A stretch of 63,984 bases of DNA, counting the filler, from Guillardia theta CCMP2712 (lineage: Eukaryota; Protista; Cryptophyta): NCBI RefSeq assembly GCF_000315625.1. It is 3 parts of 3 records of this genome, joined end to end, with 100 filler letters (N's around TTAATTAATTAA, not from the genome) between each part and the next. Parts side by side here need not be neighbours in the genome. Positions count along the whole stretch, not along the records: positions 31,683 to 62,802 come from NW_005434555.1; 2 more parts are not named here. One strand, 5' to 3'. A model generated the notes under the pieces. That model worked only from the letters and a program-made list of their open reading frames with translations. It did no database searches and was not told the origin of the DNA. This document shows, piece after piece, positions 52,331-54,795 of the stretch. The position numbers and the translations under genes were made by a program. The first letter of the stretch is position 1; each line of letters starts with the position of its first letter.

Positions 52331-52648
52331 GTGAACATCTGAACGCAGCCGGGGAAGGGAAAGGGAGGAGCAGGAAGGGATGGAGGTCCATAGTTACGCA
52401 GCGTCCCTGTCCTGTAGTTGCCTTCCCTGTTGCTTCCTTTCCGCTTGCTCCCTTCCCCTTCTCTCTCTTACCCTTTGAGCTTGTCTTGGCCTACCATACA
52501 CATAATTGAGACCCTCTCTGTCTTTATCCTCCTCCTTCCTCTCCAGTCTCCTCCAAGTTCCCAGAGAAACGAGAAATCTTCACTTCCTTTATTGTACATC
52601 CTACTCCCACTTTACATACTCTCCCTCCTCCTCCTTCCCCCCCTCCTC

Positions 52649-52942
52649 TCACGCCGACAACCCTTCCGCCTTCCTCTTCCCCCATGGCATCGAGTGTCTC
52701 CTCCCCGTTGTCGCTTTCTCTCGGGCCTTGAGCACGCTGCCGAGAAGCATGTCGGAGGGCTTGGCGGGAGGGGCGGAGGGCGCGTCGGTGCGGGAGGGGT
52801 CGCGGGGGTCAAGGAGGTCGGAGGGGGAGGAAGGGGAGGGAGGGGCAAGGAGGAAGAAGGAAGGTCTACGAGAAGGGAGGTAGAAGCGCTCGTCCTTGAT
52901 CTGGATGCTGATAGCGGAGGAGGGGGAGAGGGATCGGCACAT
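52649..52942 (-). CDS. Hypothetical 97-aa microprotein (MCRSL family, copy A)
   Basis: gccaccATG start; the frame is conserved with copy C despite indels. Confidence 0.55.
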   Translation of the reverse strand: MCRSLSPSSAISIQIKDERFYLPSRRPSFFLLAPPSPSSPSDLLDPRDPSRTDAPSAPPAKPSDMLLGSVLKAREKATTGRRHSMPWGKRKAEGLSA

Positions 52943-53537
52943 GGTGGCAGACGGAGGGTTTTGGAAGGAAGCGAGGGGAATGAGGGACGGGAGGGAGGTA
53001 GGGAGAGGACGTGGGGGAGCGGAGGGAGGCAGGAGGGAGCGGCGGGAGCGGCGGGGAGAAGATTGAAGGACTTGCAGGGTAGGCGGGGAACGATATAGAG
53101 AAAGGGGGGAGGAGGCTGATCCTGCTGACAGTGAAAAGTAATGTTATCTGGGTATTGATCACGGCCTGCTGACAGGCTGACATTGAGGCTCTTTGTTTGC
53201 TTACAGCCCAAATGCCTGGCAAGGAATTGTGGATGAAAGAGAGTCATTTCACAGAATTAGGAACATGTCGGGGCCGGAAACATGCAACGGATGGCAGCTT
53301 GAGGAGATTGAAATCCCCAGATAGATACCCTCAGTGTCCCTTGTTTCCCAAATTCTTCCTTTTCGCATCAGCCCCCCGCCCTCCTTTCTTCCCTCTTGCC
53401 TACAAGAACTTGCCCCTACAAGAACTTTCCCCACCCGCCCCTCCCTCCTGCATCCCTCCGCTCCCCCACGTCCTCTCCCTCCCTCCCTCCAGTCCCTCAT
53501 CCCCCTCGCTTCCTTCCAAGTCCCCCCGTCTGCCACC

Positions 53538-53829
53538 ATGTGCCGATCCCTCTCCCCCTCCTCCGCTATCAGCATCCAGATCAAGGACGAGCGCTTCTAC
53601 CTCCCTGCGCGTAGACCTTCTTTCTTCCTCCTTGCCCCTCCCTCACCTCCCTCCCCCTCCGACCTCCTTCGCCCCCTCGACCCTCCCGCACCGACGCGCC
53701 CTCCGCCCCTCCCGCCAAGCCCTCCGACATGCTTCTCGGCAGCGTGCTCAAGGCCCGAGAGAAAGCGACAACGGGGAGGAGACACTCGATGCCATGAGGA
53801 AGAGGAAGGCGGAAGGGTTGTCGGCGTGA
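53538..53829 (+). pseudogene. Frameshifted MCRSL-family copy B
   Basis: Same start context, but GACCCTCCCGC versus GACCCCTCCCGC (~53680) shifts the frame, and there is a second indel near 53796. Could be sequencing error. Confidence 0.45.
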
Positions 53830-54311
53830 GAGGAAGAGGAGGAGAGAGGGGAGGAGGAGGAGAGGATGTAAAGTAGGAGTAGGATGTACAATAAAACAAA
53901 GCATGAGAGAAACGTGATCGCAAGACTTAAAGTTCATTGTAGAAACACTTCCGACAAAAACATCAGTGACTCCCATGCTGTTCAGAGACAGTTCGCGCTC
54001 TTTGGCATCGGGTACATCAAAGTATGAAAACTTTGTGCGCAGTCAATAAAGCCATCTCGCCCGCAAAACATCAGCATAGGAAGCCAACACGATTTCTCCT
54101 GCAAGTAACCATTGGGATGCGTATGATGAGGCGCATTTCCCCTCCGTTTTCGACTTCACCTTCGTAGAATCTCACGTGAAAAACTCGAGGATGACAAACT
54201 TGCTGGGTTCGCAGAACAGATTCGACTTTATTTTGTGCTTCCATTATTGTACATCCTACTCCTACTTTACATCCTCTCCCCCTCCTCCCTCTCCCCCCCC
54301 TCTCACGCCGA

Positions 54312-54593
54312 CTACCCTTCCGCCTTCCTCTGTCCCCATGGCATCGAGTGTCTCCTCCCCGTCGTCGCTTTCTCTCGGGCCTTGAGCACGCTGCCGAGAA
54401 GCATGTCGGAGGGCTTGGCGGGAGGGGCGGAGGGCGCGTCGGTGCGGGAGGGGTCGAGGGGGCGAAGGAGGTCGGAGGGGGAGGGAGGGGAGGGAGGGGA
54501 GGGAGGATGGAGGAGGAAGGAGGAAGGGAGGTAGAAGCGCTCGTCCTTGATCTGGACGCTGCTTGCGGAGGAGGGGGAGAGGGATCGGCACAT
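54312..54593 (-). CDS. Hypothetical 93-aa microprotein (MCRSL family, copy C)
   Basis: caccATG start; near-identical to copy A. Confidence 0.55.
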   Translation of the reverse strand: MCRSLSPSSASSVQIKDERFYLPSSFLLHPPSPPSPPSPSDLLRPLDPSRTDAPSAPPAKPSDMLLGSVLKAREKATTGRRHSMPWGQRKAEG

Positions 54594-54795
54594 GGTGTGT
54601 GGGGGTGGTTCTCAGGGATGGATCTCTGCGTGGCTGTGGAGGTTCTGGGGAAGGATGACGAACTTGAAGAAAGGCGCTGCAAGCACGGGGGGCAGAGGCG
54701 AGGAGAGTGTCAGCGAAGGGGGGCCGAAGAGTCTCTAATGACCGAAAACCAGGTTTTTCGCACAAGCTGATTTACTTGGAAGTTTCCAGAATTTC

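Follow-up and report, generated by a model that had tools for sequence, protein, structure and literature searches.

A probable lineage-restricted microprotein gene in three copies of alternating orientation in Guillardia theta

A small intronless open reading frame (ORF) was found in three copies of alternating orientation within 2 kb of the genome of the cryptophyte Guillardia theta CCMP2712 (assembly GCF_000315625.1). The window that was analyzed is 63,984 nucleotides (nt) long, filler included, and joins three parts of three records; the cluster lies in the part at 31683-62802, which comes from NW_005434555.1, and all positions count along the whole window. The cluster is probably a lineage-restricted microprotein gene rather than a transposon, non-coding repeat DNA or an artefact of assembly. 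Overall, it is an ordinary local, partly inverted gene-family expansion. In the mechanism we propose, local inverted duplications of a gene with an intronless coding sequence (CDS) of about 95 codons would have produced the minus/plus/minus set of three. The two near-invariant motifs would be maintained by purifying selection, perhaps together with gene conversion, and the inverted layout would have come about through duplication without being selected for. An earlier note on this DNA had proposed a small-protein family, and this proposal was supported by one expressed homologue from MMETSP, by codon bias in the ORF frame and by conserved motifs.

The sequence itself, repeat finding, multiple alignment and blastn of copy B all agree that the unit, 360-465 bp long, is present three times in 31683-62802, with no fourth close copy. 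The blastn search with copy B gave E values of 0 and 1e-142. Copy A (52588-53051, minus strand) consists of about 109 nt upstream of the ATG, the CDS and about 60 nt of 3' region ending in CAATAAA; its CDS (52649-52942, minus), located by ORF finding, is intact and encodes 97 amino acids (aa). Copy B (53429-53895, plus) is inverted relative to A and C and shares the upstream region of about 109 nt with A. Copy C (54244-54597, minus) is a unit without that region, as homology begins only about 5 nt before its ATG, and its CDS (54312-54593, minus) is intact and encodes 93 aa. The 3' ends of the three units coincide within 0-6 nt at a CAATAA[A/T] motif. The arms of the head-to-head pair, A and B, are 377 nt apart, with 596 nt from ATG to ATG, and those of the tail-to-tail pair, B and C, are 349 nt apart. 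The triplication in alternating orientation, the two inverted repeats and the spacers of about 380 and 350 bp described in the earlier note were all recovered in this way.

The description of the copies as near-identical was too strong, since identity over the common part is 93.4% for A-B, 93.0% for A-C and 91.3% for B-C, that is, a divergence of 7-9%. The low-complexity linkers of A and C differ by a net 3 nt and the frame is therefore kept, as had been claimed for the indels between these copies. The A/B spacer (53052-53428), which has a lower G+C content, and the B/C spacer (53896-54243), which would form the loop in any hairpin made by read-through, are both unique. Comparison of the spacers and outer flanks with each other and with 31683-62802 gave no similarity, no larger duplicated block and no palindromic center. 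The A/B spacer is a candidate shared or bidirectional promoter region for the divergent copies. It contains an 11-mer, CCTGCTGACAG, twice (53121-53131 and 53165-53175), with a further CTGACA just after, and this 11-mer may be a promoter element.

When 1.84 billion representative proteins were scanned with HMMER, the sole match was P0003, a 94-aa protein, at E 3e-16. P0003 is 51% identical to ORF A over about residues 1-90/92 of 97, and the alignment runs from the same Met-Cys start to a few residues before both stops. Its sole source is MMETSP, where the transcript ORF is labelled 'type:complete', and therefore the family is expressed in another marine protist with the same start and length. 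A word-index protein search with the profile of the family alignment (A2) found P0003 only, and the same kind of search with A alone found nothing. No match was obtained when A, B, C, P0003 and a candidate fourth member, D, were compared to Pfam, a sequence profile search of the PDB gave 0 hits, and a search of the ESM Atlas with A and P0003 gave no usable match. Scans of viral contigs, and of metagenomes with the protein profile and with a degenerate DNA pattern of the helix motif, confirmed no relatives. Rfam gave no match within the copies at the gathering score, and a tRNA scan found none. The sequences appear to form a new orphan family that is absent from Pfam and for which about 15 billion predicted proteins yielded a single relative.

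Codon composition also points to the ORF frame. G+C content at the third codon position (GC3) in this frame is 0.80 in A and 0.83 in C, compared to 0.56-0.62 at the other codon positions, and GC3 is 0.79 in 1774 training codons taken from recognisable exons of the same 31683-62802 sequence. The codon-usage log-odds peaks in the ORF frame, and the pattern among frames is as in real exons but weaker. The sense strand of the unit is C/T-rich, with about 40% C, and an antisense ORF is kept in all three copies. This antisense ORF was considered as a gene and ruled out, because P0003 matches the sense frame end to end.

The distribution of differences among the copies was compared to the segments conserved in P0003. 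Only three variable sites among the three copies fall in the 69-nt N-terminal coding segment and two in the 114-nt C-terminal segment. Of these five, two are synonymous, another two are conservative replacements (I-to-S and I-to-V) where P0003 varies as well, and the last is the TGA of copy B. The remaining differences lie mostly in the linker, the GA-rich 3' part and the A/B upstream region (10/109 nt). Between A and B, 1 of 183 nt differs in the conserved coding segments, compared to 10 of 109 upstream (Fisher p = 3e-4). The differences among copies therefore avoid the blocks conserved with P0003, which supports coding and is no proof of selection.

Several points weigh against reading the unit as a gene. 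With this composition, all six frames of each copy are largely open, so that an intronless ORF is weak evidence when taken by itself. An equal GC3 excess in some frame occurs in about 9% of non-genic windows, so the excess by itself is only moderately unusual and its support is moderate. Low-complexity tracts mutate faster by slippage, and part of the uneven divergence could have arisen in this way, with no need for selection. There is one outside homologue only, and an exact look-up of ORFs A, B and C in the collection of 15 billion proteins found no predicted protein. Copy C does not have the upstream region common to A and B and may lack a promoter. Also, any function proposed for the protein would be read from short motifs only.

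A part of this evidence could instead be accommodated by a non-coding repeat or a fragment of a mobile element, such as a foldback element similar to a miniature inverted-repeat transposable element, or retrocopies, in which the ORF would be a by-product of the pyrimidine-rich composition. The open frames and the lack of a Pfam match would fit, and the near-common end at CAATAA[A/T], the one 5'-truncated unit and the unique flanks and spacers recall element termini or retrocopies. This origin is nevertheless very unlikely given the end-to-end protein homologue with conserved start and stop, the frame-specific GC3 equal to that of real exons and the differences among copies, which avoid exactly the motifs conserved in P0003. 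Within the 31 kb, the features of a transposable element or retrocopy were not found: there are three copies only, reading of the junctions by eye revealed neither a poly(A) tail nor a clear target-site duplication, and no transposase or reverse-transcriptase domain lies nearby. Retroposition of the gene itself was considered separately, since it would explain the common 3' end, the absence of introns and the 5'-truncated C. It was rejected because neither a remnant of poly(A) nor a clear target-site duplication was seen, and three insertions within 2 kb would be odd.

The microprotein gene was also weighed against an artefact, in which alleles or paralogues from elsewhere had been misjoined during assembly. 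The sequence contains two runs of exactly 100 N, at 46672-46771 and 51250-51349, and is therefore a draft scaffold; both gaps lie outside the cluster, and the cluster side of the scaffold, 51350-62802, is gap-free. The lesion in copy B is a one-base homopolymer change, which is a typical sequencing error and would suit a flawed assembly. False inverted joins usually give identical arms, whereas the copies here are 7-9% different, have copy-specific indels and are separated by unique spacers. We therefore regard an artefactual triplication as highly improbable.

Copy B itself was claimed to be frameshifted, and this was confirmed: a 1-nt deletion in a C run, which has three C (53681-53683, plus) compared to four in A and C, moves B into another open frame. 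The N-terminal 48 codons of B in the family frame (53538-53681, plus) are the same as copy A over residues 1-23, which make up the N-terminal motif, and carry three substitutions in the linker. The C-terminal 37 codons in the family frame (53684-53797, plus) have all conserved motifs intact, so B read as two pieces encodes every conserved motif. They end in a TGA at 53795-53797, where A and C have TGG, and this stop cuts off only the non-conserved tail after RRHSMP. The missing C in the homopolymer is the sole disabling lesion of copy B. Apart from the TGA, B is the same as A across the conserved coding segments and is about 9% different just upstream; therefore B is no old decaying pseudogene. 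Possible explanations are a very recent deletion, gene conversion from A, or a homopolymer error in the assembly. The earlier note's reading of B as a disabled copy is doubtful for this reason, as the contrast of 1/183 with 10/109 differences indicates a lesion that is recent, masked or an artefact. In the table of differences, different copy pairs agree in successive stretches, a mosaic judged by eye, which suggests gene conversion.

The origin that fits the microprotein cluster best would be older local duplications, after which the unconstrained flanks diverged and the transcribed unit was held by selection and gene conversion. The near-coincident 3' ends at CAATAA[A/T] are only partly accounted for by such a history. 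The earlier note had called the family recently expanding; the local expansion stands, but 'recent' is doubtful, given the divergence of 7-9% and a much older paralogue candidate 13 kb away.

This candidate, D, is an ORF of 76 aa (39438-39668, plus) directly upstream of a WDR3-type gene. Besides the three copies, tblastn of P0003 against 31683-62802 gave a weak match at 39438. When a family hidden Markov model (built from A, C and P0003) was run on all 469 stop-to-stop ORFs of 31683-62802, D ranked first apart from the copies (E 0.003) with a match beginning at its Met, and 0 of 2000 shuffles reached its score. D has an MCK start, an I.IQ..DFYIP motif at the family distance from the start and an LL..VL segment at the position of the family helix, and it does not have the RRHS.P tail. 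Its GC3 is 0.78, compared to 0.58 and 0.47 at the other positions. Exact look-ups of D and of the neighboring ORFs showed that they are absent from the protein collection. From these likenesses, D is probably a paralogue of the three copies from an old duplication, and the family would therefore have been local already before the triplication.

In the family alignment, the N-terminal block consists of an MC start followed by S.SSA and then [IV]QI.DE.FYLP. The middle is a variable Pro/Ser-rich linker with indels, and the C-terminal block consists of PPA[KR].SDMLL.SVL..REKA followed by RRHS[ML]P.G. AlphaFold, run with a three-sequence alignment, gave a mean predicted local distance difference test score (pLDDT) of 60, with a single helix at residues 62-79 and the rest at low confidence. 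The model is consistent with a disordered protein that carries short linear motifs and one helix, and the helix, SDMLL.SVL..REKA, would be amphipathic.

RR.S followed by a hydrophobic residue is the basophilic-kinase consensus, and R..S.P is the 14-3-3 mode-I form. RRHSMP is present in A, B and C and RRHSLP in P0003. RRHS[ML]P fits both consensus forms and is conserved between species, which makes it a candidate site, and the suggestion in the earlier note that RRHS is a basophilic kinase/14-3-3-type site is reasonable. All five sequences (A, B, C, P0003 and D) start with MCR or MCK. MC- starts are reported to be under-represented, and a basic or hydrophobic residue after the Cys to favor ADO/ATE1-dependent degradation (PMC12377780). 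The Met-Cys with a basic third residue expected of a Cys N-degron start is present in all five, so Met-Cys-Lys/Arg is a candidate N-degron. Palmitoylation of Cys2 is an alternative lead for the same start. Taken together, the protein may be a phospho-regulated disordered adaptor or regulator.

The inverted layout might itself be functional. Transcripts reading from B into C, as had been suggested, or from antisense A into B, would form a hairpin that could be diced to small interfering RNAs (siRNAs) regulating the intact paralogues. Long complementary arms close together, as in an inverted-repeat siRNA locus, are present: the arms, 355-465 nt long, match each other as complements at 91-93%, the spacers are 349 and 377 nt, and B and C are convergent. 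The claim that an RNA reading from B into C would fold into a hairpin agrees with prediction, as 53520-54610 folds into a near-continuous stem of about 360 bp with a loop of about 350 nt and a minimum free energy of -838 kcal/mol, although such a fold is automatic for any inverted duplicate. In addition, the CAATAAA at each unit end might stop transcripts before the second arm. Use at the RNA level would also explain why B matches A in the conserved coding segments despite its broken frame, but a simpler explanation is gene conversion, or a frameshift that is either very recent or an artefact. Overall, a functional siRNA hairpin is unlikely. A combined scheme can be imagined in which the copies encode short-lived signaling microproteins, with an O2/nitric oxide-responsive Cys N-degron and an RRHS[ML]P kinase/14-3-3 switch, whose dosage is tuned in cis by siRNAs with the frameshifted B serving mainly as a hairpin arm. 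We consider this scheme extremely improbable.

Outside the copies, 52336-52468 (plus) contains a GA-rich/CT-rich imperfect hairpin with two sub-threshold Rfam matches, MIR408 and mir-3132. It was rejected as a microRNA-like hairpin since its folding energy was no better than that of shuffles (z = -1.2).

The surroundings of the cluster, about 11 kb between an ORF at 45204-45743 and a gene with EF-hand and WD40 domains, are poor in genes and of low complexity. The former (minus strand) encodes 179 aa and has no Pfam match; it begins MGSVESCCCC, a possible N-myristoylation and palmitoylation signal. The latter (57007-59950, plus) has several exons that encode an EF-hand pair followed by WD40 repeats, and the best database relatives of its WD40 exon are 55-67% identical. 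Further to the left are the WDR3/Utp12-type WD40 gene (40561-44782, plus), whose two long open exons encode 561 and 325 aa, and a 315-aa ORF (37556-38503, minus) with four EsV-1-7 cysteine-rich repeats (Pfam PF19114, E 1e-44). The EsV-1-7 family has been reported to be absent or single-copy in most stramenopiles and to have expanded in the brown algae and related lineages, as far back as the raphidophyte Heterosigma (bioRxiv 10.1101/2024.02.19.579948). Taken by itself, the gene with these repeats would hint at an ochrophyte and not a cryptophyte, although one gene is no proof. Much of 47000-52500 is purine/pyrimidine-skewed and of low complexity, and microsatellite-like tracts occur at 50795-50890 and 56300-56400: (GAT)n into (GAG)n, and an 8-nt GGAGGAGA-type array.

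Taxonomically restricted microproteins of marine algae are poorly charted, and the family would add to their number. Its conserved motifs (the MC[KR] start, FYLP, one helix and RRHS[ML]P) suggest regulation that is testable. With its minus/plus/minus order, the cluster also offers a small natural setting in which to ask whether inverted duplicates lead to RNA silencing or gene conversion in such algae.

Several known systems can be compared to this one. PKI, inhibitor-1/DARPP-32 and ARPP/ENSA are small disordered phospho-regulators with a basophilic-kinase site. By analogy, the microprotein resembles them in a length of about 95 aa, mostly disordered sequence, short motifs and RR.S[ML] followed by Pro. 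It has no sequence homology to these regulators (Pfam, PDB and Atlas searches were blank). With the Cys-Arg/N-degron substrates RGS4/5/16, IL-32 and plant ERF-VII it shares the Met-Cys start followed by Lys/Arg, a likeness of three residues only.

The arrangement of the copies can be compared to duplication-triplication/inversion-duplication (DUP-TRP/INV-DUP) structures, in which replication template switching places an inverted middle copy between two direct copies. The minus/plus/minus order with an inverted middle copy is the same. The copies here differ from such structures in being sharply bounded, gene-sized and 7-9% diverged, with unique spacers between them and junctions without duplicated flanks. 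The Arabidopsis PAI1-PAI4 tail-to-tail repeat, the soybean CHS inverted-repeat I and the Drosophila hairpin RNA (hpRNA) loci are inverted duplicates that silence paralogues. Compared to these, the arms of the G. theta cluster are 7-9% diverged and its hairpin is deduced from the nucleotide sequence, whereas the inverted copies of a coding gene, the short spacer, the intact paralogues in cis and the potential to form a hairpin are features that it has in common with all three.

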